Part shown: one piece after another, positions 1-19,885 of the stretch | How positions within the stretch are numbered: the first letter of the stretch is position 1 | Layout of the letters: each line of letters opens with the position of its first letter | Assembly (NCBI RefSeq): GCF_006345805.1 | Contig: NW_021824108.1 | Span: 1 to 19,885 of the forward strand | Length of the DNA stretch: 19,885 nucleotides | Direction: 5' to 3' | Source: Octopus sinensis | Lineage: Eukaryota | Translations under genes and position numbers: made by a program | The notes under the pieces: model-generated | The model's input: only the letters and a program-made list of their open reading frames with translations | Told to the model about the DNA's origin: nothing | The model's database searches: none

Positions 1-120
1 TAAAATTGTCATACAGATGACCTATCAATTGGAAATGAGGAATGTAACTTGTTCTCATTCATTCTGACAAATAAAATAGATCAGGTGAAAGTAAAATATA
101 TAGAAATCAAATATACTCAC

Positions 121-192
121 CTATTTGCCACCAATCACGTCCTAACCTCTTAGCCACTCTCAGAAGATCTTTCTCCTTCAGAACTGGACTCT
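121..192 (-). CDS. Exon encoding the N-terminal helices of a death domain (ESPVLKEKDLLRVAKRLGRDWWQIG)
   Basis: atttcAG acceptor (194-193), GTGAGT donor (120-115), 72 nt, phase 1-1, open frame. The L-x2-VA-x2-LG-x-DW-x2-(I/L)G pattern is typical of death-domain helices 1-2. Confidence 0.8.
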
Positions 193-934
193 CTGAAATA
201 AATATTTCCAGCTTTTATAATTTATTGTAAAACTTATTTATCTCTATAAATATTCTGTAGTTTATTGTTGTGGGACATTGTTATCATCAGTGGTTGGCTG
301 GTAACCACTAGGGTTTTGCTCAGTATTTTTATACTTTCCATTGTGGGACCAGGTAATAGCTCAATATTTAGGCCCGCAACAAAATAGACTAACTTTCCGA
401 AACCTTGTTTCTCTTTAACAGAGACATCCTACATAATCTAACAATGTTGCAATTATTTCATTCAATTATCATTTCATAGTTCTCTCTCTCCTTTCATATA
501 TCTGTACCAAATCTATGACATGTGACTGTCCTCTGAACTCTACACTTCACTAACCACCATTCTCCTCATCTTCTGCTAAAGTCCAATATCATCCAATGTG
601 GTCTCCAAAGATCTCGTCAGAATTGCATGACACACCACTTCAAGTAAAATAAACGTAATACCTGTTCTCTTTGCTGTTGGAAATCTTGAATTTTATCATC
701 CCACATGCCAGTTCACCTGGTCATTATCTGGTGCAGGGAATATTTTAAGACTCCTTAATACAGGTGAGCAATGATCAGTTCTCCACAGATGAAACAAAAA
801 GTGATATCAGGTGTCCTAAAACACTGCACACTTGTACAAAACCCCATTCACTACATACAACTGGACATCTACACATTATTGCAGTGAAGACATCTGAAAT
901 GGTACAAAAGGACTGATACTCAAAAATATATAAG

Positions 935-1985
935 AAAGACGGGAATACAAAGTGCGAGCTCCAAATCTTTTATTTTCCAGAATGTTTGGCATATTTGTTT
1001 CTTTTAACCATCTTCGTTCTGTGACTTGATCTCAATGCCTTTACTCTTATTGCAAAATTAGGTAGTTTACCATCGTCGTAATAGTTTTTCAAGTTTCCCT
1101 TTAAACTTCATCAGGGTTTCTCCTGCTATTTTGACCTTCACTTGTTTCTGCTGACCTTTCACAAATGACGGGCTGCATTACCCATTTGCATTGAACCACA
1201 TTCTTCACCAAGTTCCTCAGTCTACTCAGTTAATCCAGAACTATTTGCATATCCTTTTATTTGTTGTTACTATTGTCATGTAATCCATTAATGTCTTCTC
1301 CAGTGTTTTCCTTTGAGCCATTTCTTATCAATCTGCTGATTTAAGTAACATCTCCATAAAAATCACAAACCAAATGACTGATTTTGTAGAAACTACAGCA
1401 ATTCCCGCTTCAAAATGATACCAGTCTACCGAGAAAGTTTTCCTCAAGAACTGCATATTGAAATTGTTATAGCAGCTCCTCATCAGATCCTTAATCTTTT
1501 CTCATATATAAAACAGGTCCACTGCTTCCATCAACAATTTGTTTGCTAGAGAACCATAAACCAGATCAAATCACACAACATTCAATCCCTTTTATTCTTC
1601 TTTCCGTCTTGTATCACATCCTAGATTTAAGACACATGTTCCACACAGCCTGGAATGCCAGAGGATTCCAGTCTTCAAGATACTTTTAGTCCCATATTCA
1701 TTATTCTGTAGATTTACAGTTGATCTCTTTGTGAATACAACCTTATAAATCTTGCCATCAATATTCAAGGTTGAAATTAGTCTGAACTAATCAATCGGTA
1801 TTTGATTGCTGGTTTCAATGGACATTTCAAACTGTCTATGAATGGGAATCATTGCTTTTGCTTTGGATCTCCTGCATATATCCATCCAGTTCATCTTTAT
1901 TGTATTTTAGCTTTCTGTTCTCAGTATCTGCAAACAGAATTTCCTTGTAGAAGTTAAAGAGGAGCGTTTAATTTTGTTGACGACA
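935..1985 (-). mobile_element. Degenerate non-LTR retrotransposon RT fragment, restriction-like-endonuclease group (Hero-like)
   Basis: Broken minus-strand frames read FRLISTLNIDGKIYKVVF, GIPGCVEH, DVIQDGKKNKRD, DWYHFEAGIAV and HSGK*KIWS. These match the FRTISLLNVEGK / GIPGCxEH / LPGKxKxW motifs of this RT group. Many stops and indels. Confidence 0.7.
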
Positions 1986-2009
1986 TGATCATTTTTCTAG
2001 GGCTTTTGG

Positions 2010-2200
2010 AGCAAAATTGTGCCCAAGGCCCTTTTTAAAGTGGTTGATGTTAGGAAAGGCACATCACCATAGAAAAGCCGGAATGTGTTCCTCATCCAAT
2101 CAAGGCGGACAGTATTTGTTAATAAGAACTGACATGGATAGGAATCATCCATCCAATCGATAGGAGCATAGACATCAGATGATAAATGATGAGGGTCATC
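2010..2200 (+). mobile_element. Old degenerate RTE-tail/SINE-like repeat
   Basis: gtggttgatgttaggaaaggc ... agcat ... atgatga resembles the 3' end of the RTE copies (gtggttggcgttaggaatggc ... gatgatg). Homologous to 4180-4390. Confidence 0.5.
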
Positions 2201-2696
2201 AGTGTCTATCTTGGAGAGAGAGGGAGAGAGAGAACAGTTGTCTCAACATCAAACCTAATGCTTTTACATGGATAAAGACAATGTTTAGGGGATGTAATGA
2301 TAAATTTATTATCAGTGAGAACAAAAGGCAGGGTGTTCACATACGGAACACATTTCATTGTAAATCTGTCATATTATGAGAGACATTTGCCTAAATAGCA
2401 ACAACAGCAATAACCTATCAGTAAACTTAGTAACTACATATTTTAGTCCTCCGTTTCAAAATACAGTATTAATTCTATTGTCTTCTAAATTATCCATTTT
2501 CCGAACCATGCCAACCCCGTTGGATATTTTGTGAAATTCCATTGATATCAAAATGTCTAATAGAATTATTATACAGCTAAAATTTCAGATGTAAATTAGG
2601 AATGGATCTTGTCCTCAGTCATTCTGATAAACTACAAATGCTCAGGTGAAGGTTAAAAATATAGAAATCCATGAGGTACTGTTATTTGCTTCTCAC

Positions 2697-2744
2697 AAAC
2701 TGGCTGTGATGTTGTCAAGGCATCCTTCACAGACGTTGGAGTGT
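2697..2744 (-). pseudogene. Dead linker exon copy (TPTSVKDALTTSQPV) with mutated acceptor
   Basis: 48 nt, phase 1-1, GTGAGA donor. The acceptor reads ttcAA instead of ttcAG. Flanks are homologous to those of the other linker exons. Confidence 0.65.
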
Positions 2745-3649
2745 TTGAAATGAATATTTTCAAGTTTTACGTTTTATAGTATAATTTCATTATAGTTATT
2801 GATAATCAACACTTTATTATTGTGGGAAGGGCATACATCTGTAAAAACTAGTTCGTAGGGATGTGGTTGTGTACCCATATAAAAGTTATGTTAACTTTGA
2901 GGGTAACAAGGTGTAAAATATCAGATGAGGGTACAAGATAATGCTATGAAACTTCCAGACAGACAAGTTTAAGAGAGTTAATGAATGATAGCTGATTAAT
3001 TATCATGTTAATGCGGCGTTTAAACACTAACTATCAATATAGATTGTATAAAATCTGTGTGAAGAACATGTGACATTTGTTACAATGAATATGGTTGTGT
3101 CTCAGCACAGTTGATATGATGGCAGTTCCATGAGAAACCATAGAAAAATGTAACCATTTCCAGTACCGAATACTAATGATGAATTCTTTTCTTGGTCAAA
3201 TAACAATGACCAGGTTCCATGATCTAATTTCAACATAACAATCAAGTCGGAAGTAAAACCAAAATGTGAAAGACTGAAAACAGTGACTCTCTTACAATTG
3301 AAACCATCTCAAAGCCAACAATTGTCAGTATAACGATGTCTATATGGACAGTAAACGTTATTGAAACATCGTAACAAGCGATAATTATATATATATAGTT
3401 AGAAAAGAGTTGTGAGTTCAAGTCACACAGGAATCTCTTACGTTCATTCCTTTCCATGTATTGCATATGTTAGCATCAATGTTTTGTTCAAATGTGAACA
3501 TATGTTCTCTGTTCAATATGAATGTTATCAAAATCACTGAATCGGTTTCCACAATCGATATTATTATACTGAGCTAATATGTTATACCAGACAGGAAACT
3601 ACTGTAACAATCTAAGACAAAGAATTATGATGAGTTACTGGAAGACATC

Positions 3650-3830
3650 ATCATCATCATCAACATTCAAAGTTTGTTTTCCATGCTGGAATGGGTTGGA
3701 AATCTTGACAGGATCTGACAAGCCAGACAACTGCACCAGGCCCCAGATGGTTTCTTTGGCATGGTTTTCTACGGTAGGATGTTCTTATTGATGCCAACCA
3801 CCTCACAGAGTGTACGTGGCCCCTTTGTGT
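3650..3830 (-). mobile_element. RTE 3' tail / RTE-tailed SINE remnant
   Basis: (CAT)n followed by ttttccatgctgg..gggttgga..gccaaccac, the reverse complement of the RTE 3' end seen at 5560-5732. Confidence 0.65.
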
Positions 3831-4179
3831 AACGCACAAGTACTGGAATATTTAGCCAAAAGACATGTAAGACAAAGACCCCACAGCCGGGAGAGGGGGT
3901 ATTGCAAATTTCTCTCCCCGCATCCTGATTCTTTTGTCATCACATTCCCTTCTCACCTCCTGAAAATGTCATCAGCTTCAGTGAAGCAAAACATCATAGA
4001 GTAGTGAGGACCGTCTAATTATATAGAATGTAGCACAACTTGATTACTACTTGTGCTATAATTAAATGCTCCCAGAACACACTAGGAAGTGGTTGTTGGA
4101 AACTAGGAAAGATGACACCACAAGTTTGAAAGGAACGTTTGATATTGTTGGGAAATTGATGATCATTTCTAATGCTTGT

Positions 4180-4390
4180 GCGACAATAAAATATACCCAG
4201 GACCTTTTATAAAGTGGTTGGGGTTAGAAAGGGTCTACCACCTTAGAAAAGCTGCAATGTTTAAGTGAGATGTTTTCCTCAACAAATGACGGTTGGCAGT
4301 AATTTCAGATACAACTGACTTGGACAGTGATGACCCACCTAGTGTATGGGAGCATGGAGAGCAGATGAGAAAGGATGAGGATGATATCAT
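4180..4390 (+). mobile_element. Old degenerate RTE-tail/SINE-like repeat (paralog of 2010-2200)
   Basis: aaagtggttggggttagaaagggt ... ttagaaaagc ... gggagcatggaga ... gatgaggatgat. Preceded by tgatcattt and followed by a GA-rich tract, as at 2010-2230. Confidence 0.5.
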
Positions 4391-4907
4391 TTATTGTATT
4401 GAAACTTTTAACCAGCATCTTTCTTGAAAAGACGGAGAGAAAGAGCATGAGTGAGAGAGAGAGAATGAATGAGTACAATGAGATGACAAACAGGGCGAAT
4501 ATTCTCCTTAACGGGAGAGAACCGTTTCAGGGTTTATATTTAATTTTTGTATCTTTCTTTCTGCGAGTGAATGAGTAACTGATGTTTGCATAAAGTACAT
4601 TTATTGGATATTTGTGTTGTTGTAGAAGAACAGAATTTCTTTATAGCTAAGCATTCAAATGAAATCTAGCATTGGAACCTGTTCTCGGTCATTATTAGAT
4701 ATCAATATAGATTGTATATAATCTGAGTAAAGAACATATAACCTTCATTACAATGAATATGATTGTGTCTCAGCACAGCTAATATTATGGTAGTTCCATG
4801 AGCAAACGAAGAAAGATATAACCAAGTCCACTGCCAAATACTAATGACTAATTCATTTCCCGGTCAAATAACAATGACTATATTCTATTAAATAATTTGA
4901 ACGCAAC

Positions 4908-5732
4908 GATGTCAGTGTGTACACAAGGCAGAGTGAAGAGGCCTGAGAGAAGTGTTAGACATAAGAAGCATCAGATGTGGTGTACAAGAGAGACAACTGC
5001 ACTGGTATGGTTATGGGTATGGATGAGGAGAATTGTGGGAAGAAGTGTTACACCCTCACAGTGGAAAGAACCCGTGCAAAGGGGTGACCCAGGAAGACAG
5101 GGGATGACGTGGTGAAACGACCTTCGAACGTTGGGCCTCACAGAGGTAATGGCAAGAGACAGAGACCACTGTAAATATGATGTGATTAAGAGGACTCGGC
5201 AAGTGAAGTGAGATCACAGCTGTAGCCTATACCAGTGGCGCATAACCAGCCCCTTTTAAAAGTACCCTTGAATCACAGAGTGATAAGTTGCGCTTGAGAA
5301 GAATTTCCGAGTCAAGTAAAACCAAAAACCAGAAATCACAAATCAAAATCAAATCAAGATCGAAATCAAAATGCAAATTGTAATTATGGCCAATGCCAGT
5401 GCCGCCTGGCTGGCACATAATAAGTACCATTCAAACATTGTTTGTTGCCAGTGCCGCCTGACTGGTTCCCTGTGCCGTTGGCACATAAAAAGTACCTTCC
5501 GAACGTGGACAATGCCAGCCCCAACTTCAACTGGCTCCTGTGTCGGTGGCACGTAAAAGGCACCCACCACACTCTCGAAGTGGTTGTCGTTAGGAATAGC
5601 ATACATATGTGGAAACCTTGCCAGATCACATTGCAGCCTGACGCAGCCTACTGCCTTGCCAGTGAAATCGTCCGACCCATGCCACCATAAGAAACGGATG
5701 TTAAATGATGATGATGATGATGATGATGATGA
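4908..5732 (+). mobile_element. 5'-truncated RTE-clade LINE, copy 1
   Basis: Degenerate ORF C-terminus (RSIRCGVQERQLHWYG ... G*PRKT ... RTLGLTEVMARDRD ... RTRQVK*) typical of RTE. The 3' UTR has repeated hairpin subunits and a (GAT)n tail. Confidence 0.88.
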
Positions 5733-5982
5733 GTTCTGTGACCAAATGACAAAATTAACTCTATTGTGTCTTCTAATTTGAACATTATTACCAACAGCAT
5801 TAACCTCAATGGGTATTTCATAAACTCACAGTAAATCGATATCTTTAATACAATTATTATAGAGATAATCGTTCAATTGGAAAATAGGAATGGAAGCTGT
5901 TTTCAGTTATTCTTTCGAGCACAATATACTCGGGGGAAGTAACCTTACAGAAATCAATTGGGAACTATTATTTTATACTCAC

Positions 5983-6060
5983 CAATTGCCTGAGATGTAG
6001 CCCCTAATTCCTGACATGTAGCCTCTGTTTGTACACACCTGTCCTCACAATTTGGAGCCC
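5983..6060 (-). CDS. Linker exon (GAPNCEDRCVQTEATCQELGATSQAI)
   Basis: tttcAG acceptor, GTGAGT donor, 78 nt, phase 1-1, open. Confidence 0.75.
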
Positions 6061-6284
6061 CTGAAATAAATATTTCCAAGTTTTACATTTAAAAATAAAC
6101 TTTCTTCATCTTTATTTATATTAAACTCTATCTTGTTATTGTGAGACATTCAATTTCTGTTGTTAATGGTCAAATGTTGACCATTATGGTTTTGGTCAAT
6201 ATTTCTGTACTTTCTACAGTGGTCCCATGTAATAGCCCAATATGAAACAATAAAACAGACTAACATTCTATATCCACCCTCTCC

Positions 6285-6317
<33 letters not shown>

Positions 6318-6984
6318 AAAAACATTAAATATTCTAACAATGTTGCAATTATCTCATTTAATTAACACTTGATAACAGTTTTCTCTTAGCATTGTCTTTC
6401 TTTTCTTATAACTGCGCCAAATCTATGGCATGGCACAGTCCTCTCATCTCTAGAATTCACTAATCAACATTCCTCTCTAATTAAGTAAAACTGAGCCCAT
6501 AAAGACATGTCCTTTACGTGCATACCCCCCACCCCGCACACAATCTGTCCCCTAAAAATCATCTCCACAAGCCAAATTCCATACACCCTTCCCCAACATG
6601 ATCCCTAACAAGGTGTAAAATGTTAGGTGAGGGTACACGAGGTCCCTATGACAAAATCAGTTTACATTTCAGACATACAAATGTAAGAGAGTTAATGAAT
6701 TATAGCTTATTAATTATCATGATAATTGGGTATATATGTGATACAATGGCACAGTGCTTGACGGTGCAATACTAGATATCAATATAGATTGTATATAATC
6801 TGAGTAAAGAACATATAGCCTTCATTACTATGAATATGATTGTGTCTCAGCACAGCTAATATTATGGTAGTTCCATGAGCAAACGAAGAAAGATATAACC
6901 AAGTCCACTGCCAAATACTAATGACTAATTCATTTCCCGGTCAAATAACAATGACTAACTTCCATTAAATAATTTGAATGCAAC

Positions 6985-7825
6985 GATGTCAGTGTGCACA
7001 CAAGGCAGAGTGAAGAGGCCTGAGAGAAGTGTTAGACATAAGAAGCATCAGATGTGGTGTACAAGAGAGACAATTGCACTGGTATGGTCATGTGTATGGA
7101 TGAGGAGTGCTGTGGGAAGAAGCGTTACACCCTAACAGTGGAAGGAACCCGTGGAAAGGGGTGACCCAGGAAGACAGGCATGACGTGGTGAAACGACCTT
7201 CGAACGTTGGCCCTCACAGAGGTAATGGCAAGAGACAGAGACCTCTGGAAATATGACGTGATTAAGAGGACTCGGCAAGTGAAGTGAGATCATGGCTGTA
7301 GCATATACCAGTGGCGCATAACCAGCCCTTTTTAAAAGTACCCTTGAATCACAGAGTGATAAGTTGCGCTTGAGAAGAATTTCCGAGTCAAGTAAAACCA
7401 AAAACCAGAAATCACAAATCAAAATCAAATTAAGATCGAAATCAAAATGGAAATTGTAGTTGTAACCGATGCCAGTGCCGCCTGGCTGGCACCTGTTCCT
7501 GTGTCACGTTATAAGTACCATAGAAGCATAGGTCCTTGTCACTGCCGCCTGACTAGTTCCCTGTGCCGTTGGCACATAAGAACACCATCCGAACGTGGTT
7601 GATGCCAGCACCCACCCCGACTGGCTCCTGTGTCGGTGGCACGTAAAAAGCACCCACCACACTCTCGGAGTGGTTGGCGTTAGGAATGGCATACATATGT
7701 GGAAACCTTGCCAGATCACATTGGAGCCTGGCGCAGCCTACTGCCTTGCCAGTGAAATCATCCAATCCATGCCACCATAAAAAACGGACGTTAAACGATG
7801 GTGATGTTGATGATGATGATGATGA
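6985..7825 (+). mobile_element. 5'-truncated RTE-clade LINE, copy 2
   Basis: Same 5' truncation point and (GAT)n tail as copy 1. Confidence 0.88.
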
Positions 7826-8075
7826 GTTCTGTGACCAAATGACAAAATTAACTCTTTTGTGTCTAAAATTTGAACATTATTACCAACAGCATTAACCTCA
7901 ATGGGTATTTCATAAACTCACAGTAAATCGATATCTTTAATTCAATTATTATACAGATAATCGTTCAATTGGAAAATAGGAATGGAATCTGTTTTCAGTT
8001 ATTCTTTCGAGCACAATATACTCGGGGGAAGAAAACCTTACAGAAATCAATTGGGAACTATTATTTTATACTCAC

Positions 8076-8153
8076 CAATTGCCTGAGATGTAGCCCCTAA
8101 TTCCTGACATGTAGCCTCTGTTTGTACACACCTGTCTTCAAACTTTGGAGCCT
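8076..8153 (-). CDS. Linker exon (EAPKFEDRCVQTEATCQELGATSQAI)
   Basis: tttcAG acceptor, GTGAGT donor, 78 nt, phase 1-1, open. Confidence 0.75.
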
Positions 8154-8370
8154 CTGAAATAAATATTTCCAAGTTTTACATTTAAAAATAAACTTTCTTC
8201 ATCTTATTTATATAAACTCTATCTTGTTATTGTGAGACATTCAATTTCTGTTGTTAATGGTCAAATGTTGACCATTATGGTTTTGGTCAATATTTCTGTA
8301 CTTTCTACAGTGGTCCCATGTAATAGCCCAATATGAAACAATAAAACAGACTAACATTTCTATATCCACC

Positions 8371-8404
<34 letters not shown>

Positions 8405-9080
8405 AAAAACACATTAAATATTCTAACAATGTACCAATTATCTCATTTAATTAACACTTGATAAGAGTTTTCTCTTAGCATTGTCTTTCTTTTCTTATAA
8501 CTGCGCCAAATCTATGGCATGGCACAGTCCTCTCATCTCTAGAATTCACTAATCAACATTCCTCTCTAATTAAGTAAAACTGCGCCCATAAAGACATGTC
8601 CTTTATGTGCATACCCCCCACCCCGCACACAATCTGTCCCCTAAAAATCATCTCCACAAGCCAAATTCCATACACCCTTCCCCACATGATCCCTAAATCC
8701 CTAACAAGGTGTAAAATGTTAAGTGAAGGTACACAAGGTCCCTATGACAAAATATGTTTACATTTCATACATACAAATGTAAGAGAGTTAATGAATTATA
8801 GCTTATTAATTATCATGATAATTGGGTATATATGTGATACAATGGCACAGTGCTTGACGGTGCAATACTAGATATCAATATAGATTGTATATAATCTGAG
8901 TAAAGAACATATAACCTTCATTACAATGAATATGATTGTGTCTCAGCACAGCTAATATTATGGTAGTTCCATGAGCAAACGAAGAAAGATATAACCAAGT
9001 CCACTGTCAAATACTAATGCTTAATTCATTTCCTGGTCAAATAACAATGACTAACTTCCATTAAATAATTTGAACGCAAC

Positions 9081-9909
9081 GATGTCAGTGTGCACACAAG
9101 GCAGAGTGAAGAGGCCTGAGAGAAGTGTTAGACATAAGAAGCATCAGATGTGGTGTACAAGAGAGACAACTGCACTGGTATGGTCATGTGTATGGATGAG
9201 GAGTGCTGTGGGAAGAAGCGTTACACCCTAACAGTGGAAGGAACCCGTGGAAAGGGGTGACCCAGGAAGACAGGCATGACGTGGTGAAACGACCTTCGAA
9301 CGTTGGCCCTCACAGAGGTAATGGCAAGAGACAGAGACCTCTGGAAATATGACGTGATTAAGAGGACTCGGCAAGTGAAGTGAGATCACAGCTGTAGCCT
9401 ATACCAGTGGCGCATAACCAGCCCCTTTTAAAAGTACCCTTGAATCACAGAGTGATAAGTTGCGCTTGAGAAGAATTTCCGAGTCAAGTAAAACCAAAAA
9501 CCAGAAATCACAAATCAAAATCAAATTAAAATCGAAATCAAAATGGAAATTGTAGTTGTGACCGATGCCAGTGCCGCCTGGCTGGCACCTGTTCCTGTGT
9601 CACGTTATAAGTACCATAGAAGCATAGGTCCTTGTCACTGACGCCTGACTAGTTCCCTGTGCCGTTGGCACATAAGAAACACCATCCGAACGTGGTTGAT
9701 GCCAGCACCCACCCCGACTGGCTCCTGTGTCGGTGGCACGTTAAAAGCACCCACCACACTCTCGGAGTGGTTGGCGTTAGGAATGGCATACATATGTGGA
9801 AACCTTGCCAGATCACATTGCAGCCTGACGCAGCCTACTGCCTTGCCAGTGAAATCGTCCGACCCATGCTACTATAAAAACGGACGTTAAACGATGATGA
9901 TGATGATGA
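9081..9909 (+). mobile_element. 5'-truncated RTE-clade LINE, copy 3
   Basis: Same 5' truncation point and (GAT)n tail as copies 1 and 2. Confidence 0.88.
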
Positions 9910-10159
9910 GTTCTTGACCAAATGACAAAATTAACTCTATTGTGTCTTCTAATTTGAACATTATTACCAACAGCATTAACCTCAATGGGTATTTCATAAA
10001 CTCTCAGTAAATCGATATCTTTAATTCAATTATTATACAGATAATCGTTCAATTGGAAAATAGGAATGGAATCTGTTTTCAGTTATTCTTTCAAGCACAA
10101 TATACTCGGGGGAAGAAAACCTTACAGAAATCAATTGGGAACTATTATTTTATACTCAC

Positions 10160-10237
10160 CAATTGCCTGAGATGCAGCCCCTATTTCCTGACATATAGCC
10201 TCTATTTGTACACACCTGTCTTCAAACTTTGGAGCCT
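10160..10237 (-). CDS. Linker exon (EAPKFEDRCVQIEAICQEIGAASQAI)
   Basis: tttcAG acceptor, GTGAGT donor, 78 nt, phase 1-1, open. Confidence 0.75.
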
Positions 10238-11915
10238 CTGAAATAAATATTTCCAAGTTTTACATTTAAAAATAAACTTTCTTCATCTTTATTTATATTA
10301 AACTCTATCTTGTTATTGTGAGACATTCAATTCTGTCGTTAATGGTCAAATGTTGACCATTATGGTTTTGGTCAATATTTCTGTACTTTCTACAGTGGTC
10401 CCATGTAATAACTCAATATGACCACAATAAAACAGACTAACATTTCTAATCCACCCTCTCCCTCTCTCTCTCTCTCTCTAAAAACACATTAAATATTCTA
10501 ACAATGTTGCAATTATCTCATTTAATTAACACTTGATGACAGTTTTCTCTTAGCATTGTCTTTCTTTTCTTATAACTGTGCCAAACCTATGGCATGGCAC
10601 AGTCCTCTCATCTCTAGAATTCACTAATCAACATTCCTCTCTAATTAAGTAAAACTGCGCCCATAAAGACATGTCCTTTATGTGCATACCCCCCACCCCG
10701 CACACAATCTGTCCCCTAAAAAACATCTCCACAAGCCAAATTCCATACACCCTTCCCCAACATGATCCCTAACAAGATATAACATGTAATGTGAGGGTAC
10801 AGGATGTTCCTATGACAAAATCAGTTTACATTTCAGACATACAAATGTAAGAGAGTTAATGAATTATAGCTTATTAATTATCATGATAATTGGGTATATA
10901 TGTGATACAATGGCACTGTGCTTGACGGTGCAATACTAGATATCAATATAGATTGTATATAATCTGAGTAAAGAACATATAGCCTTCATTACAATGAATA
11001 TGATTGTGTCTCAGCACAGCTAATATTATGGTAGTTCCATGAGCAAACGAAGAAAGATATAACCAAGTCCACTGCCAAATACTAATGATTAATTCATTTC
11101 CTGGTCAAATAACAATGATTATCTTTCATTAAATAATTTGAACGCAACAATCAAGACCAAAGGGTGAAACACTCAGAAAACTGTGCCTCTTTTAGCATTA
11201 ATATCATCTAAAATCTAACAAGAGTGAGAAAAAGAATGACTATATGGATGGTAAATGTTGTTCAAACAATGTAATAAGTGTATATTATATATAGCTACAA
11301 AGAAGGATTTGTGTATTCAAGTCATATTCAATTTCTGATCGTATATTTTGTATAAACACCAATAATTTGTTTAAATATAAACAGATATTCACGGTTCAAT
11401 ACTAAATTTAACATTTAATAAAATTAAGTTCATGATGAATATTCTTATACAGAGTTAATATTTAATTAGAATTTTCTAATTTGCAACAACAAAATGTATT
11501 CTAACCAGAGACATTCAGGGTACACAACCCCAGAAAATACAAAATATTACGACAGACATCTGGCTACATAACAACATCAAGAATAACCTATCAGAAAACT
11601 TACGAAAGATCTTAGTAGAAAAACAAACAACTATTTTATTAATTCACGAGTTTACACCTAAAATAATAAATTATAGTTCCATCTTCCAGAAGACAATATT
11701 AACTCTATTGTGGCTTTTAATTTATCCATTTTACCAAACACGTTAACCATGACTTTATGAAATTTCAGTAATATTTTTAATACAATTACTTTAGAGCTAA
11801 CCTTTCAAATGGAAATTAGAGATGGGATTTGTTCTCCACCATTCTAATACGCAAAATAGCTGAGGTGAATGTAAAATCCATAGAAATTAATTAAGATCTC
11901 TTATTTTAAACTCAT

Positions 11916-11966
11916 CAACTGTCTCTGCCACAGTCTGCACTCCCTTCTCTTCAAACTTTGGACTCT
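11916..11966 (-). pseudogene. Linker exon (ESPKFEEKGVQTVAETV) with mutated donor
   Basis: atttcAG acceptor intact, 51 nt, phase 1-1. The donor reads ATGAGT instead of GTGAGT. Confidence 0.65.
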
Positions 11967-13119
11967 CTGAAATATGTGTCTCCAAGTTTTATATTTATTT
12001 ATAGCACAAGTTCTTTATATTTATTAATAATCTATATTTTATTAATGAGAAACATTCATACCATCAATGGCCAACCGGCGATCATAATTGTTTTGGTCAA
12101 TATTTTTATACTTTCAACAGTGGACCCATGTAATAGCCAATATTTAGCTCCAAAACGAACTCTAGTTGATCTTTGTAAATTTCCTCTCTCTGTTAAGATA
12201 TCCTACATAATCTAACAATGCTGTAATTATATCACTTAATTATCACCTAATAACAGTTAATCTGTAGGTTTTGGTTTCCCTGCTTATATCTATGCCAAAT
12301 CTATTGCCTTTTCAAAACCCTGATCTTCACTAACAACCTGTTTGATTCCAGTGTCAACAAATTTATTCATCAAAGATATAACAACAAACACATGTCACAA
12401 CCACTTCAAGAAGGAGAAACATACACCTGATCTCTTTGTTAAACATTGTTGCTGATAATCCCTAATTTTAACTTCACAGTTCACCAGAATGTCATCTCAT
12501 TCAAGATATATTTGAAGGTTTCATGATCTGGTTGGAATGTGACACTCAAGTCAGAACCAAAACCTAAATTTGAGAGACGGACAAAACAGTGTCTCTGTTA
12601 GCCTTGATATCACCCAAAGACCAACACAGCAACATGGAGTTGCGTGTTGAAGTCTCAAAACAGGTGACACATACAATTTACTCCTTTAAAATATTCTACT
12701 AAATTTAATACTTTACCAAAGATGACACTGATGTCCTTGTAAGTACTGTTGTATTTAATTATCTTCTAATAACTCATAATTATCTTATAATAACTCATAA
12801 TTAATTATAGAGCTGATGGAGATTTATTGATACTTCAGTTACTCACTAATTATCTTGCAGAATCTTCCATTATTTTTATGTTGCAGACTACAACCCTCTT
12901 GAAGTGTGACATGTTTCCTACTTGGATAAGGTCAATGTTTGGTGGATGTAGTGTGAGAGATATACTATTACAGAGAACAGACACTAGGAACACCTTTTAT
13001 CATAAATCTGCCAGATTATGGCAGACCTCTGCCTACATAACAACATGAAGTATATTATTCTACACAATAAGGGCAGTGGGACAAGCAGGACAAACAGACA
13101 GATCAGCAAGATTTCTTAC

Positions 13120-13257
13120 CATCTCCAGTTCTGCTCGTTACAGGTTTCCCGCACTTCAAACATCGTTGAAGTGTAACGTTTGAACATCCCTTACATATTA
13201 CAAGGTGTCCACATGGATGAACTTTTGTTGTGGCCGCTTTTTCTGCACCACAAACAT
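13120..13257 (-). CDS. Mind bomb-type C3HC4 RING finger exon
   Basis: atccacAG acceptor, GTAAGA donor, 138 nt. Open in phase 1: VCGAEKAATTKVHPCGHLVICKGCSNVTLQRCLKCGKPVTSRTGD, containing PCGH-x3-C-x2-C-x8-C-x2-C and ending like MIB RING1 (VxSRT). The first ligand pair (CLWC) lies in another frame. Confidence 0.88.
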
Positions 13258-13653
13258 CTGTGGATAAAACAGAAATATCCAATCAATAACATTCATTTAT
13301 AACAAATATTATTTATTTACATGTTCGGAATAGAGAATATTATAAGATACATCAGTAACTACCAAGAGTAGAGCAGAAATCTTCTTTAAACATTACATAC
13401 ATACAGCATTTTGTGTAGTTAAATGACGCAGAAACACAACACACACACACATACATACACACACATGCATACATACATTGATAAATGTTTGTCTTGACCC
13501 TGATACATCATAGAAATTGGTTGACACACAGTGAACTGCATATCTTCCAGAAATATATTTCACTTCTAACATCGAACTCATTTCTTCTGAAGAAAATATC
13601 TACACAGGTTTCTTTATATACACATACTGTATTGTATACATTCCGTCAACACA

Positions 13654-13716
13654 GATTAGCAGATGAGGTTTCCAGCACTGCAGAGTGGCAGAAATTACCC
13701 GAAACTAGTACTGGTC
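13654..13716 (+). ncRNA. Type I hammerhead ribozyme motif (one core substitution), probably from a Penelope-like or retrozyme repeat
   Basis: GAUUAG-CAGAUGA-[hairpin 13667-13700]-GAAA-CUAG-UA-CUGGUC. Stem I has 6 bp with two G-U pairs, stem III is the palindrome ACUAGU and the triplet is GUA. The core reads CAGAUGA rather than CUGAUGA. Confidence 0.65.
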
Positions 13717-13883
13717 AGCTAGACACATCCCTAGAAGATGGTAGGGGTTCGCTCCCCTGCTGCAATTTATCGGATGCAGTTCCGCATTGTTAACCAACTG
13801 GAGGAGTTGTCTCTTGGGGTTCAAAATTCGCAGTGGAGTCCATTGGAACAGATAGTCACGCTGGCGTGGCCTACGAGTATTAC

Positions 13884-13932
13884 TTATATATATACATATA
13901 CATATACATATACAGAGAGAGAGAGTGAGAGA
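13884..13932. repeat. Compound microsatellite (TA)n(CATATA)n(GA)n
   Basis: Directly visible. Confidence 0.9.
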
Positions 13933-14112
13933 GGAATTCACGAAAAGAAAAAACAAGACGAAGACAAGTAGTGTAGACAACAAACATATGTATAAGTTTA
14001 ACGCTCGGGAAGTGAAAAAGTCTTTAAAGTTTCGAGCCTACACTCTTCAACAGGAAGGAATACAGAAGGAAACAAGGAGAGAAAATAAAGAATGTGTAGT
14101 GGCTAGCGATCT
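13933..14112 (-). mobile_element. Short interspersed repeat, possibly a Penelope-like terminal repeat with a degenerate hammerhead-like core
   Basis: Minus strand CUGUUGA-A-GAGU-GUAG-GCUC-GAAAC at 14053-14029. Flanked on both sides by TA/GA microsatellite. Stem I is not recoverable. Confidence 0.4.
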
Positions 14113-14135
14113 ATCATATATGTATATATATATAC

Positions 14136-15920
14136 ATATTCAATTCAATTCAATATTTTTTTCAATTCCTTTTTTTATTGGCTCAAAGGTTATGTAGGAG
14201 GATAGGGAGTTATGTACAGAGAGGGTGGTCATACAAAGAGTTCAGACCATTTCTGGTCAAGAGAGACTTTGAACCGAGCGGTCGTCGACATCTTCACTAT
14301 GTCGTCCGGCAGCTTATTCCACGGACCCGCAACCCGGACGGAGAAAGCCCCTCTCCTTCGATTGAGATGAAATTGTCGTAGATAGAGCTTTTCGGAATGA
14401 CCCCGCAGCCGACGCTCTGGAGCAGGAGTAAAGAACAGCTCTTTCGAGAGGTTACACTTTCTGCTTATGATGTTGTGAGCAAGAATGAGATCACCACGGC
14501 GTCGTCGTTTTTCTAGAGAATAAAGGTCGAGCGTCTTCAGCCTTTCTTCATAAGACAAATGCTTAAGACCAAGAACCATGCGGGTAGCCAGCTTCTGGAC
14601 TCTTTCGAGATGCTGTATGTCTTTGAGGAGATAAGGAGAAGAGGCTTGAATCCCATACTCCAATATGGGTCTCACCAGCATGACATAGAGTGGTAGGAAT
14701 ATGGCTGCTGTGAGCATTCCGAATGACCGTTGAATCAAGAACAGAATTCCGCGTGCTTTGTTGGCAGCATGGACGCACTGGGCCGAAGGCGAAAAGGAGG
14801 AATCCACCAAGATACCCAGGTGCTTTACCTGATCGGTCATCTCCAGCAGCAGACGACCCGGCTCGAAATCAAGTTGAGTTGCAGGAGGAGAGCCAACAGG
14901 CAGATGACCGCACTTTGACACGTTCAGACACAGGTCCCGTTTGTTTGACCACCTCCGAACTTGGTGGAGGCATCGACGAAGATCCTCTATATCACTGTGA
15001 GGAGCAACCAGTTTGACATCGTCGGCAAATAGAAGGGTGTGTTGCGTGAGGTCGTCGGGCAAGTCATTTACGAAGACTAAAAATAATAACGGCCCAAGCA
15101 CTGAACATTGAGGCACGCCACTGCTCACACTGGAGACGTCGGACCGCGAACCATTAAATTGGACTTGGAAGGAGCGATCTGAGAGGAAGGCACCAACCCA
15201 TCGTACAATATCCGGATGGAAACTATATGCTTGAAGCTTGACAAGTAATAGGCGGTGGTTAACCGAGTCAAAAGCATTGGCAAAGTCCAATAAAACGATG
15301 TCAACAGCATCACCATCATCCAGGATACGCGCCACCAATTCTTCCATTACCAGAAAGCTGGTCAAGCATGATCTCTTCAGCACGAAGCCGTGTTGGGAAT
15401 CAGAGATAGAGGCTGTGTTTTGGAGGTGGAGCAACATACTTTTCTTAAGGATGGTTTCGAATATCTTGCTGAATATTGAAGTAAGGGAAACCGGTTGGTA
15501 GTTAAGTGGGTCTTTGCGGCACCCTTTCTTGAAAATAGGGCAGATTATCGCTGTTCTCTAGTCCGCAGGTACAACACCCGTCGCTAATGACATATTGAAT
15601 AGAAGTGTTAAAGGTTGGCAGATGACCGGAGCCAACGCTTTGATAACCTGTGGGTGTATGCCATCAGGGCCGTGACCCTTGTTGATATCGAGGCCTTGAA
15701 TAACGCGTTCGACTTCGTCCCGAGTGATGACCAATCTAGGCATTGGAGGTACCCATCTATCAAATGGAGGGGGTTCACGACCATCATCTTGTTTGAAAAT
15801 TGTCGAAAAAGCCTCGGCAAATAACTAACTCTGCTGATAAGGGTCCTCAATCGATACACCTGTTGATTATGTGTCACGATGCTTCCCCTTTATTGATGGC
15901 GTCGTATATTTGTTCCTTAA
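14136..15920 (-). mobile_element. Young 5'-truncated CR1-clade LINE (reverse transcriptase)
   Basis: 402-aa ORF 14229-15437 with QHGF, LDFANAFDSV, GVPQCSVLGP, FADD, LGILVD and RRRRGDLI. The upstream in-frame part (GPDGIHP, PAD*RTAIICPIFKKG) is interrupted by one stop. The 3' UTR has AATAAA (14179-14174) and an (AATTG)n tail. The 5' boundary is approximate. Confidence 0.93.
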
Positions 15921-15984
15921 ATGTGACATCTTCTTTTCTACTACATTAAATTTTTCTCCTCTTCTAATTTGGCTGACTACAAAA

Positions 15985-16880
15985 CTATGGAAAATTGCCA
16001 CTGTCATTTCCTTATCCAAGAAGAGTATTAAAAAGGTGACCCCTTAATAACTACCAATTATTGTCCAATCATTTTCATTAGCTGCCTCATCAAATTTATG
16101 GTGTTCTGTGACAGAGAGAGATACTTTGAAGAATCTGGAATTCACATAACCTTATTCCATCCTCACAATTTGGATTTTTCCCTAATTCTAGCTGCTGTAA
16201 CCAACTCACAGAATTTCTTCAAGACAATCACCTAAATAACATATTGTGGCTTTTGGGTAGATGTTATTTACCTCGACTTCACCAAAGCCTTTAATTCTCT
16301 GCCACACAAACGAATTATGTTGAAGCTGTCTGATTTTGGGTGAGGATTAATTTACTTAAATCTCTGATGTCGTTCATTCTTGCTTAACAAGAAGTAGTCA
16401 CAGTGTAATGATACTATAGAATCACACCTGAAGATTGGTAGGATCTGTTTTAGTCCATTGTTGTTCTGGAAATGTATTAATTTAATTGATGCCAAACTGA
16501 AGCAGGTTACTCTACGCTACAGATCATTGCTTCAGCCTCATCTGGACATTTGCAGCAAGGTGCTGTCTAAATCAAGCTAGTTGTAGATAGGTGCACCACT
16601 ATACATTATGGAAGGTAAACTCAGAATTTACCAATTTCCTCCACAACACCCAACTTCAGAAGTCTACTGGTGAACTGGACCTCGGGATTAATGTCAAGAA
16701 GGACATTTGACGGATGATTCCCATTCCTAAAGTCATCAAAAAGATCGAAAGTATCTTAGCATCTCTCTGAAAACGCTTTGTCTTGCACTTTGTCAAGTTG
16801 TCTGTTTAAAGTTACGTATGGGAAATGGTATGTCCAAACTTACGGTATTCACCTCCAATCTGGAACCCCATCCTGTCTAG
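15985..16880 (+). mobile_element. Old, heavily degenerate CR1/L2-type LINE RT remnant
   Basis: Broken plus-strand frames read WKIATVI, SQFGFFPNSSCCNQL, DVIYLDFTKAFNSLPH, DLGINV and NLRYSPPIWNP. Confidence 0.8.
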
Positions 16881-16920
16881 AATATTACGTACAGCTAGGC
16901 AAATACACTCTGTCACTCAC

Positions 16921-17081
16921 CATATCTTGAATGTATTGTTTCTCTCGGTATCATCTGAGTACATTAAAATTTGGATGTCTAACAGCTGACTCAGTGGAAT
17001 CCCACAAGAATATCCATCATCTTCCCAACAACAACTTTGGTAATCGTTTTGAAAGCAATTTCTCCAACACCAGCAGACATG
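16921..17081 (-). CDS. Cys-rich spacer exon between ankyrin and RING exons
   Basis: Pyrimidine tract ttttctctttgttctaAG, GTGAGT donor, 161 nt. Only the phase-0 frame is open (HVCWCWRNCFQNDYQSCCWEDDGYSCGIPLSQLLDIQILMYSDDTERNNTFKI). Confidence 0.6.
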
Positions 17082-17552
17082 CTTAGAACAAAGAGAAAAG
17101 CAGTGCAGCACCCATGACTTTCAGAAATATTTTTCGCTGTTCAGAATTTTTGAAGCATGAAATAAACTGATATCTCTTGTTAGATATCAGGACACTGCAT
17201 TCTTCAAAACTTCCATATTTCCTGAAATTCCCTAACACTCTTCCTGATGTACCTATGTCTTCTTTCTTTGATATAACTCTTTTACTGTTTCCCTCCTTTC
17301 GGGTTGTTTTATTATATGTATCGTGCATCTACTTCTAGCTTCCATTGCTGCCTTTCTTTGACTAATTGCAGTTTTCTGTCCCCTATTTGCCCCTTTCCAG
17401 TAACTTCAGCTGCGCTCTATAGACATTATATTATTATTACAACATTCACATAAACGATCATTTGTAAAGTAGAGAAAATCTTCTGAGGCTTGTCAATTGA
17501 AGAAAACAGATCTATATTTATGCAGACCAAAAATCAATATCTCTGAACAATA

Positions 17553-17710
17553 GGCGCAGGAGTAGATGTGGTAAGTAGCTTGCTTACCAACCACATGGTT
17601 CTGGGTTCAGTCCCACTGCGTGGCACTTTCGGCAAGTGACTTTACTATAGCTTCGGACTGACCAATGCTTTTTGAGTGGATTTGGTAGAGGGAAACTGAA
17701 AGAAGCCCAT

Positions 17711-17776
<66 letters not shown>

Positions 17777-17976
17777 GTGGTTGTGTAAATTGTCTGTCTG
17801 TGTTTGTCCCTCCACCATCGCTTCACAACCAATGTTGGTGTGTTTACGTTCCCGTAATCTAGCGTTTCAGCAAATAAGTACTAGGCTTACACAGAATAAG
17901 ATCTGGGGTCGAATTTTTCGACTAAAGGCAGTGCTCCAGCATGGCCGCAGTCAAATGACTGAAACAAGTAAAAGAG
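17553..17976 (+). mobile_element. tRNA-derived SINE with internal (TA)n/(TG)n expansion (octopus-type)
   Basis: tRNA-like head with A-box-like tgtggtaagtag and B-box-like ggttcagtccc. (TA)n at 17714-17765. Tail ccagcatggccgcagtcaaatgactgaaacaagtaaaaga, which I recognise from octopus SINEs but have not searched. Confidence 0.85.
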
Positions 17977-18690
17977 TGATATTTAAATTTCAACAGACAA
18001 AGAAAGTTTTGTATATTCACTGAGGGGGAAATGTGTCTGCTTCTTAAGTAGCTCATACAGAGAGATGTATGGCAACGAAATTGCCAAACCTTATAAAATA
18101 CGGGAGTGAAAGGCGACTAAAACACCTAGTAATGGTATATGTGTTACTTGAATTATTTACGTTTCCTGGCAGGTTTTTTTCTCTATGAAGATATGTGGCA
18201 ATATTCCATCAGTATTTGCAGAAATATAATATATACACAGTTGGTGTGTGTTTGTAGGTTATTTTTCTATGAAATCATTCTTAATATTGACTGATTCGGA
18301 CATAGAAGAGTGAGAAAAAGATGTTGGTAGACAGATAAATTCCACTTAATTCTAAGTAACAGTTTCAAAATGGAATTCATTCACTTCATTATTTAGATCT
18401 ATATTTTCGTATTGATCACAAATCTTTAAAATAGGGAACGAAGAGGGGTAGGTGGTGATGGACAGTGAAGTATAACTGGCAACACTACGAATCATGTGAA
18501 TGTAATCTAAATCGTGTTCTTTCTTTGATCTCCTGACAACTGCATATTGTTTATTGTGTGGCCTTTGACAAAAACACTAGCGACAGTATAATGTATGGGT
18601 AGAATTAAAACGAAATAAACATATAAACATGATTATATACAAAATAGAAAATGTACTGGTTTATCTGTTCCATTGCCAGGAAATACTTAC

Positions 18691-18862
18691 TGTGGTGGTA
18701 AAAATGCTTCTAATTTTTCTCAAATTTGGGTCCTTAATGAGGTCAAATGGTGTGTTATATTTGTTGTTTTTATGGTGAAAGTCCGCTCCCTGGCTGGCGA
18801 GATATCTACCTACCACTACACCAGAGAGCATTTCATCCTCTTCAGGTAAGGGAAGTGCAGCA
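18691..18862 (-). CDS. Exon with the last ankyrin repeat of a Mind bomb-like protein
   Basis: atttgtAG acceptor, GTAAGT donor, 172 nt. AALPLPEEDEMLSGVVVGRYLASQGADFHHKNNKYNTPFDLIKDPNLRK matches the MIB1/MIB2 pattern FLA-x2-GAD-x4-N-x-K-x2-SPLDL-x2-DPNL. Confidence 0.88.
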
Positions 18863-19444
18863 CTACAAATGATGAATAAATAAAAATTATGACAATATTA
18901 CACAAATATTCAAAACAAATGCCCCTAATTACACAAAAGTTCATCTAAATTTACTCATAGCTTGTTTATCCACTAATTAAAGCAATTACAAAGTATTGAG
19001 TTCCTACATAATCTTTAATTGAGTCCATTTCCCATTTTCATGTTTTTACTTTATTTTAACACTGAGACACCTCTAAATATTGTCATTACATTGAGCAGGA
19101 GAAAACCGTATTGATTAACATCAAGCTTATTTATTAATGAGTAAATATTTACTTGTCAATATTCAATAGAAAGTCAAATTTAGGAAGAACAAACCAACAA
19201 GAACCTATCTATATAATTGGCTTGATAAAGGCGAGCATGTGGCCATAAGAAAGAGTATTGTATATATAAATATAACACAACATGAGAAGAAAGAACATAA
19301 GTTATATCAGAAACAAAAACACCTATAACATAACAAAGTCAATCCCACACAGATATGACCACATATCAATAATGTTTCCATAATTAAGCAAGAAGCATCT
19401 TTGAATGATGACGGTAAAGTAAAGGAAGCAGGAATTAGTGTCAA

Positions 19445-19650
19445 GTCAGAAAAGTAATGGAGGAGTATTTTTAATCACGGACAAGTGAATTTTGGAAGAG
19501 GCGACTTGCAAGTCTACCAGATAGATGGAAGAGCATTGTAGAAAATGAAGGAGAATATGTTTTAGATTAACAGAAAAAAGTACTTTGTTTATCTTAATTT
19601 TGAAAAATATAAGGATTATAAAAAACTGCTTCATTTATGAGATGACAGCA
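19445..19650 (+). mobile_element. Mariner/Tc1 transposon 3' fragment
   Basis: VRKVMEEYF*SRTSEFWKRRLASLPDRWKSIVENEGEYVLD* (19445-19570) is the typical mariner transposase C-terminus (LPxRWxxxVENxGEY). A probable TIR remnant follows. Confidence 0.8.
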
Positions 19651-19764
19651 AAAAGTCCAGAAGTATTGAAGTCTATATTGTTGATGACATCAGATAGCCG
19701 AATACAGTGAACGGGCTTTAAACAGCATTTTACAAGATATATACTCAAACTTAAAATCACTACT

Positions 19765-19795
19765 TGTGTGTGTTTGTCTGTGTGAGTGTGTGTGT

Positions 19796-19857
<62 letters not shown>

Positions 19858-19870
19858 TTGTGTGTGTGTG
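19765..19870. repeat. (TG)n microsatellite
   Basis: Directly visible. Confidence 0.95.
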
Positions 19871-19885
19871 CCTAAGTACAGAACT

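Follow-up and report, generated by a model that had tools for sequence, protein, structure and literature searches.

A probable Octopus family of Mind bomb-derived ankyrin-RING proteins with a death domain and duplicated linker exons

The exon set, its closest locus and its reading frame

The 19,885-nt stretch of Octopus sinensis DNA analysed here (RefSeq assembly GCF_006345805.1, contig NW_021824108.1, positions 1 to 19,885; hereafter the window) carries on its minus strand the 3' two-thirds of one member of a gene family, from the last ankyrin-repeat (ANK) exon to the first exon of a death domain (DD). An earlier reading of the letters (the sequence-only reading) had placed an ANK exon and a RING exon like those of Mind bomb (MIB) and a DD exon on one strand, and every exon that it listed is present on the minus strand with canonical AG/GT borders. 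The last ANK exon (18691-18862, 172 nt) was placed by its splice sites and by tblastn to the related proteins P0023 and P0004; its product contains ...EDEMLSGVVVGRYLASQGADFHHKNNKYNTPFDLIKDPNLRK..., after which the frame shifts. This 57-residue exon alone gave no match in Pfam, and its homology was established by aligning it with paralogs and with a genuine Mind bomb. The RING exon (13120-13257, 138 nt), of the zf-C3HC4_3 type and resembling RING1 of Mind bomb, encodes ...AATTKVHPCGHLVICKGCSNVTLQRCLKCGKPVTSRTGD and scores 30.4 bits against the Pfam profile (cut-off 27). It is followed by three linker exons of 78 nt, all in phase 1/1: c3 (10160-10237), encoding (E)APKFEDRCVQIEAICQEIGAASQAI, c2 (8076-8153), encoding (E)APKFEDRCVQTEATCQELGATSQAI, and c1 (5983-6060), encoding (G)APNCEDRCVQTEATCQELGATSQAI. 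The last exon, death-domain exon 1 (DD1; 121-192, 72 nt, phase 1/1), encodes helix 1 of the DD as (E)SPVLKEKDLLRVAKRLGRDWWQI. As had been proposed, the RING exon, the three 78-nt exons and DD1 splice into a single open frame of 444 nt, with all junctions in phase 1. In two related loci, L005 of O. sinensis and L001 of O. vulgaris, 1.54 kb separate DD1 from the second DD exon downstream, which places the latter about 1.5 kb past the end of the window.

The closest locus is L005, on O. sinensis contig VCDQ01005714.1. A single 11.9-kb alignment joins window positions 19856-8048 to L005 17504-29300 with 97.0% identity, and the remainder of the window is 95.5-96.1% identical; on this basis, L005 is therefore taken to be either the ortholog or a very recent duplicate of the window gene, and it is called the ortholog below. 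L005, which was placed via P0060, an isoform of the same length, encodes P0023 (XP_036355759.1), a protein of 346 residues with ANK repeats, CLWCRNKAATTKVHPCGHLVICKGCSNVTLQRCLKCGKPVTSRTGD, three 26-residue repeats and a C-terminal domain. Identity between the window exons and P0023 is 92-100%, with 100% over residues 140-179 of P0023 in the RING part. The RefSeq models of L005 join the same exons as predicted for the window, including the RING exon to the counterpart of the exon at 121-192, a junction on which the sequence-only reading had made itself depend; its isoforms X1 to X8 differ in the linker exons used.

A second O. sinensis locus, L003 (contig VCDQ01008168.1), is a paralog colinear with the window. 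It is frame-broken independently, by 1-nt deletions at other sites (6254-6479 and 8824-9025), and its RefSeq model is a truncated protein of 124 residues (XP_036371419.1). L003 and a further O. sinensis locus, L004, were rejected as orthologs, being paralogs with only 90-95% identity. The O. vulgaris locus L001 was also rejected, since it reaches 94.6% in the 3' part only, with 65-74% in the RING and ANK parts. The contrast runs along the alignment itself: window 1-11436, covering the linker array and the DD exon, matches L001 16552-28039 with 94.6% identity, whereas window 12897-13623, the region of the RING exon, matches L001 15745-16440 with about 65%. Such mosaicism, with 94-96% identity in linker array and DD exon but only about 65% in the RING exon of the same loci, suggests unequal crossing-over or gene conversion of the 3' module.

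With L005 as the frame reference, four deletions are found in the window copy. Three lie in the ANK exon, which has 176 nt in the ortholog: 1 nt at about 18847 (TTAACC to TTACC), 1 nt at about 18843 (GAAAGAGG to GAAGAGG) and 2 nt at about 18718 (GAGAAGAAAATT to GAGAAAAATT). The fourth, of 2 nt at about 13241 (CAGAAATAAAGC to CAGAAAAAGC), lies in the RING exon, which has 140 nt in the ortholog. When the ANK exon is read from phase 0, as in the ortholog, it gives CCTSLT*, with a stop at codon 7. The frame that holds the ANK motif ends in phase 0 and the RING exon requires phase 1, and if the two exons are joined directly, a stop is reached within the RING exon. The compatible splice phases that had been claimed for the whole set thus hold from the RING exon onward and fail between the ANK and RING exons. 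Through the 2-nt loss at about 13241, the first CxxC of the RING (CLWC) also falls off-frame from AATTKVHPCGHLVICKGCSNVTLQRCLKCGKPV, and the 444-nt frame consequently encodes an incomplete RING that lacks the first cysteine pair. Its Pfam match starts at profile position 7-8, and the eight C3HC4 zinc ligands do not stand in one frame, whereas P0023 has the full set (C-x2-C-x11-C-x-H-x3-C-x2-C-x7-C-x2-C). Frame lesions relative to an intact close ortholog, together with a preserved exon-intron structure, are the marks of an unprocessed pseudogene. As assembled, the window copy is unable to make an ANK-RING-linker-DD protein.

The linker exons in their tandem array

The three linker exons sit in a tandem array (4524-11230) of units of about 2.08-2.10 kb, three to four in number and 95-98% identical, with one 78-nt exon per unit; more diverged units continue on both sides, as far as about 12307 and position 1. 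The linker had been read as a segment in its own right, and this does not stand. The DD1 region is homologous to the array units over 400-600 nt, including both intron flanks, with BLAST E values of 4e-44 to 4e-50 and 66-70% identity. The three linker exons and DD1, four copies in all, agree in the 3' end of the acceptor tract (tatttatttcag) and in the donor GTGAGTAT. Kinship extends to the protein level, as seen when SPVLKEKDLLRVAKRLG is set against APKFEDRCVQTEATCQELG and SPKFEEKGVQTVAE. Judged from these alignments, the linker consists of three tandem duplicates of DD exon 1, the parent type, with no independent linker segment. These exons are a clean case of new cassette exons arising from tandem duplication of an exon with its intron flanks.

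All linker exons are in phase 1/1, so that any number of them can be spliced in. L005 has four linker units and the window three (L005 26909-34171 versus window 5983-10237). The fourth L005 exon is 75 nt long and carries an internally compensated frameshift that gives CVKKSYMSGLG in place of CVQTEATCQELG; it is nevertheless used in RefSeq isoform X1. For intact paralogs and for the ortholog, the annotation lists many isoforms that vary in linker exons, and the isoform labels of one other O. sinensis gene run up to X22.

The comparison covered nine copies of 78 nt, taken from the window and from two related loci. They do not differ in their acceptor and donor motifs, and every one keeps an open phase-1 frame. 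In most pairs, divergence is higher in the exon than in the adjoining intron: c3 and c2 of the window, for example, differ at 4 of 78 exon sites versus 11 of 379 flank sites. A single copy, L005_28992, makes the pooled flank mean (0.094) too high, since its flank extends beyond its alignment. Distinct variants among the copies comprise nine nonsynonymous and three synonymous changes. The linker exons thus evolve no more slowly than their own introns, and divergence combined with preserved splice motifs and frame would look like the pattern expected of a spacer under little sequence constraint.

Other copies have decayed. A linker-type exon of 51 nt, c0 (11916-11966, minus strand; ESPKFEEKGVQTVAETV), is dead through a donor change from GT to AT and is in the same dead state in L003 and L005. 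A further copy of the linker exon unit (2656-2766, minus strand) has lost its acceptor through a change from CAG to CAA. In L003, the copy at 14106-14581 holds a 77-nt linker exon with a stop (about 14306-14382). Rfam and tRNA scans of the window gave no match and thus point to no obvious RNA-derived origin of the repeat unit. Two of the approximately 2.1-kb units contain a (CT)n tract (6279-6317 and 8371-8404), and an (ATG)9 tract at 5705-5732 corresponds to a histidine run on the minus strand.

The intron between the ANK and RING exons contains a fragment of a reverse transcriptase of the long interspersed nuclear element (LINE) type (14232-15824), on the same strand as the gene, which is intron content and no part of the gene product. 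It comprises an open RVT_1 frame of 442 residues at 14232-15557 (E=4.5e-27) and an upstream piece; it is also found in L005 and is missing from the paralog L003. Microsatellites were seen at 19765-19870, where (TG)53 lies at the window edge, and at 17714-17765, where the repeat is (AT)26.

A family of RING and death-domain proteins in Octopus

A query of the joined exon translations retrieved Octopus proteins only. They include the O. vulgaris models P0005 and P0006, which have the RING, two or three 26-residue repeats and the C-terminal domain, and the small O. sinensis proteins P0007 to P0010, with the RING and C-terminal domain. A query with an ANK-RING member added dozens of models of 200-370 residues named 'MIB1-like' or 'MIB2-like'. 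The ANK-RING-linker-DD architecture deduced by the sequence-only reading is thus annotated in proteins of O. sinensis, O. vulgaris and O. bimaculoides, and at least 25 representative clusters (50% identity) carry RING and DD. The source was read for 17 of these clusters, all of which belong to one of the same three species. The earlier label 'cephalopod' is wider than the evidence, which concerns only the genus Octopus; within the libraries searched, the family appears to be Octopus-specific. Members lie together on single small chromosomes or scaffolds: P0073, P0075 and P0088 on O. bimaculoides CM046630.1 (10.08 Mb), and P0002, P0005, P0006, P0078, P0112 and others on O. vulgaris CATOCA020000001.1 (12.0 Mb). 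This co-location indicates a clustered, tandemly expanding family. Its proteins are already held in RefSeq and UniProt under automatic names (MIB1-like, MIB2-like, ankyrin-3-like, uncharacterized). Full-text literature searches found no paper describing the RING-DD family, and death-domain proteins are mentioned in two proteome papers on octopus mucus, but in general terms only. In one protein model with a single RING, P0069 (278 residues), a leucine-rich-repeat-like stretch separates two family-type DD segments; this could reflect either a merging of gene models or yet another shuffled architecture.

The C-terminal domain was examined by profile and by fold. Pfam Death is its top match, over profile positions 5-80 of 86, with single sequences scoring below the cut-off, and several paralogs such as P0011, P0021 and P0045-52 exceed the Pfam Death threshold in precomputed annotation. 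An Octopus-only profile retrieved the DDs of PIDD (4.4e-4) and RIPK1 (8e-3) from the PDB, and its further matches, among them Fas, FADD and ankyrin DDs, were mostly DDs with a few weak non-DD proteins. A HMMER scan of 1.84 billion representatives yielded 124 proteins, and Pfam Death was found in 90 of the 113 scanned. The wider DD profile, which is partly circular because it includes non-Octopus DD proteins, gave 4e-17 for the RIPK1 DD, and all 43 of its PDB matches were death domains. A first AlphaFold2 run on RING plus DD with 10 sequences was too poor to use (predicted local distance difference test score, pLDDT, 58.8), and a deeper alignment was used instead. The resulting model of the paralog P0011 has a mean pLDDT of 77 (80-90 in the core) and shows the six-helix death fold, of which the window holds helix 1; its best 23 Foldseek matches in the PDB are all death domains, the top one being the RIPK1 DD with template modelling (TM) scores of 0.73/0.83 and a root-mean-square deviation (rmsd) of 2.1 Å. 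According to profiles and the predicted fold, the C-terminal domain can be regarded as a death domain, as the sequence-only reading had held for the exon at 121-192 together with the next exon. The Pfam cut-off misses the DD in many family members, which matters for genome annotation. A DD near that of the family (profile domain E=5e-21) was also seen at the C terminus of the adhesion-GPCR-like proteins P0097 and P0205 of O. bimaculoides (1283-1535 residues), so the same DD type is joined to other Octopus proteins too.

The N-terminal part points to Mind bomb, as had been suggested. P0164, which came up in the HMMER scan, is a genuine Mind bomb, with Mind bomb SH3 repeats (scored as SH3_15), ANK repeats and three zf-C3HC4_3 RINGs. 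Residues 1-177 of P0023 are colinear with its residues 464-649 (E=1e-17, 29% identity), in an alignment that spans the last ANK repeats with the long interrupted repeat among them, the motif GAD...PLDL..D.NL, and RING1 with its RCLKC. Pfam found only Ank and zf-C3HC4_3 in P0071, the longest member scanned (545 residues), and in P0023; the window gene itself begins beyond the window, which does not contain its 5' end. Every member read has one RING, where two or three C-terminal RINGs would mark a Mind bomb ortholog. With the N-terminal Mind bomb domains, RING2 and RING3 absent, the family is a derived partial copy and not a Mind bomb ortholog; the alignment argues that it was derived from the last ankyrin repeats and RING1 of that gene.

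Rival readings, possible function and known systems

Taken together, these results make it probable that the window holds a copy, bearing four deletions, of an Octopus-specific clustered Mind bomb/DD family with DD1-derived cassette exons, whose DD would serve for docking. The family would have arisen when a partial Mind bomb copy, comprising the last ankyrin repeats and RING1, was fused to a death domain, and tandem duplication of a unit of about 2.1 kb carrying the first DD exon would then have supplied the cassette exons between RING and DD. Several points weigh against this reading. The window contains only 24 DD residues, all from helix 1, and single sequences of the domain score 15-20 bits against Pfam Death, under the cut-off of 22.6. 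The use of cassette exons by the window gene is deduced from RefSeq models of other loci, and the sampling of cephalopods other than Octopus is limited. Window and L005 differ by 85 gap openings and 207 mismatches, with many of the indels in short base runs; in our judgement, the share of indels seems to be above what real divergence alone would give, which suggests that indel errors remain in one assembly or in both. As to function, ANK-RING1-2 of mouse/human MIB1 without RING3 shows no autoubiquitination, the activity of that protein being said to rely 'solely on RING3' (bioRxiv 10.1101/2024.03.01.582834), and this in vitro inactivity argues against a simple E3 activity of the family.

The indels bear directly on whether the window copy is either a young pseudogene or null allele, or the carrier of assembly errors. 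We lean towards real decay for the four deletions, and give somewhat less than an even chance to an intact gene encoding a three-linker ANK-RING-DD protein like XP_036355759.1, in which the deletions would be errors introduced when this A-rich, multi-copy region was assembled or polished. The ratio of gap openings to mismatches, with most small indels in short homopolymers, speaks for such errors. So does the sum of the deletions, which at -6 restores the distal RING to the frame of the ortholog, and so do the exons outside the deletions, which are 98-100% identical to the intact ortholog at the protein level. However, the two deletions of 2 nt are not pure homopolymer length changes (AG/GA, AT/TA), L003/P0004 and P0032 are also frame-broken, at different sites and in another assembly, and indels are at least as dense in the exons (4 in 310 nt) as in the introns (7.2 per kb). 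Since the copy is broken as assembled, the window sequence should be checked against reads before use.

Two further alternatives concern the linker and the RING. The three 78-nt segments could be non-coding pseudo-exons, neutral by-products of the tandem repeat, with the mRNA joining the RING straight to DD1. The excess of exon over intron divergence in most pairs and the nine to three ratio of nonsynonymous to synonymous variants would fit this, as would the stop-bearing 77-nt copy in L003, the short isoforms with one linker exon and the members with none (P0022 and P0007). We nevertheless hold it to be distinctly unlikely, given that one to four linker exons are used in the RefSeq and O. vulgaris models P0005, P0006, P0023, P0028, P0032 and P0033, that splice motifs and frame are kept in every one of the nine copies, and that 17-residue versions of the same exon occur in the older members P0071 and P0048. 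An origin of the RING-DD part from a gene of the inhibitor of apoptosis protein (IAP) type, in place of Mind bomb, is barely credible. The zf-C3HC4_3 RING is common to IAPs and Mind bomb, mollusc IAPs can combine BIR, a death-fold domain and this RING, and architectures with a DD plus a RING have been described in oyster IAPs (PMC8917759). In the family, by contrast, no member scanned has a BIR, and the order is RING then DD, not DD then RING, on which two grounds this origin was rejected; moreover, the ANK tail and RING are colinear with Mind bomb, down to the DLxxDPNL motif and the RCLKC of RING1.

Under the preferred reading of a Mind bomb/DD family, the DD would dock the protein onto death-domain assemblies through homotypic DD-DD contacts and the ANK repeats would bind a target. 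At such assemblies, ANK and RING would act together as a ubiquitin ligase, or, should the RING1-type finger be inactive, as a non-catalytic adaptor or decoy; the latter role is predicted to be as likely as ligase activity. The label 'E3 ligase' in the sequence-only reading was an assumption: with a RING of the RING1 type and MIB1 inactive without RING3, E3 activity of the family cannot be assumed. In its most extended form, the proposal would be that at least about 25 ANK-RING1-DD proteins, their spacer diversified by combinatorial splicing of DD1 copies, are splice-diversified DD adaptors or ligases in innate immunity or cell-death control, with the duplicated helix-1 cassettes as possible tunable spacers or competitive mimics of the DD interface; we consider this unlikely as a whole. 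If the family is functional, a conserved ligase of the Notch pathway would have been shuffled into a death-domain protein that is confined to Octopus on present evidence and amplified there, so that a RING/ANK module would be tied physically and directly to death-domain signalling complexes. According to two reports (PMC5912950, PMC7815719), MIB2 of vertebrates reaches RIPK1 and cFLIP although it has no DD itself.

Like MIB1 and MIB2, the members of the family have the last ANK repeats with the motif GAD...N...PLDL..DPNL, followed immediately by a zf-C3HC4_3 RING with RCLKC, and NCBI names them MIB1-like or MIB2-like. They differ in that the longest member scanned has no MIB/HERC2, ZZ or Mind bomb SH3-repeat domains, and in that a single RING is followed by a DD in place of RING2, the coiled coil and the catalytic RING3; they are also shorter, with 130-560 residues versus 801 in P0164, itself a partial Mind bomb. 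With cIAP1/2 and the mollusc IAPs they have in common a zf-C3HC4_3 RING and a death-fold domain in one polypeptide, a combination known in mollusc IAPs from cell-death and immune signalling (PMC8917759). Family members, however, lack BIR and UBA, carry the RING before the DD and have an ANK N-terminus, and their fold is of the DD subfamily, not CARD. Vertebrate cIAP has the order CARD-RING. ANK-plus-DD proteins such as ankyrins, ANKDD1 and DAPK1 resemble the family in having ANK at the N-terminus and a DD at the C-terminus, and some isoforms are automatically named 'ankyrin-3-like'; in the family, by contrast, a RING and a linker of duplicated exons stand between the two, with no ZU5-UPA or kinase, and the ANK repeats are of the Mind bomb type. 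The DDs of PIDD1, RIPK1, CRADD/RAIDD and ankyrin-G, finally, are matched by the helical domain of about 85 residues in the family, which was recovered by profile, has the typical helix-1 motif L..VA..LG..W and superposes on them with TM 0.63-0.73 and an rmsd of about 2 Å. Identity in the structure alignments is 20-27%, single family sequences fall under the Pfam cut-off, and the family DD is joined to a RING, not to a kinase, ZU5-UPA or CARD.

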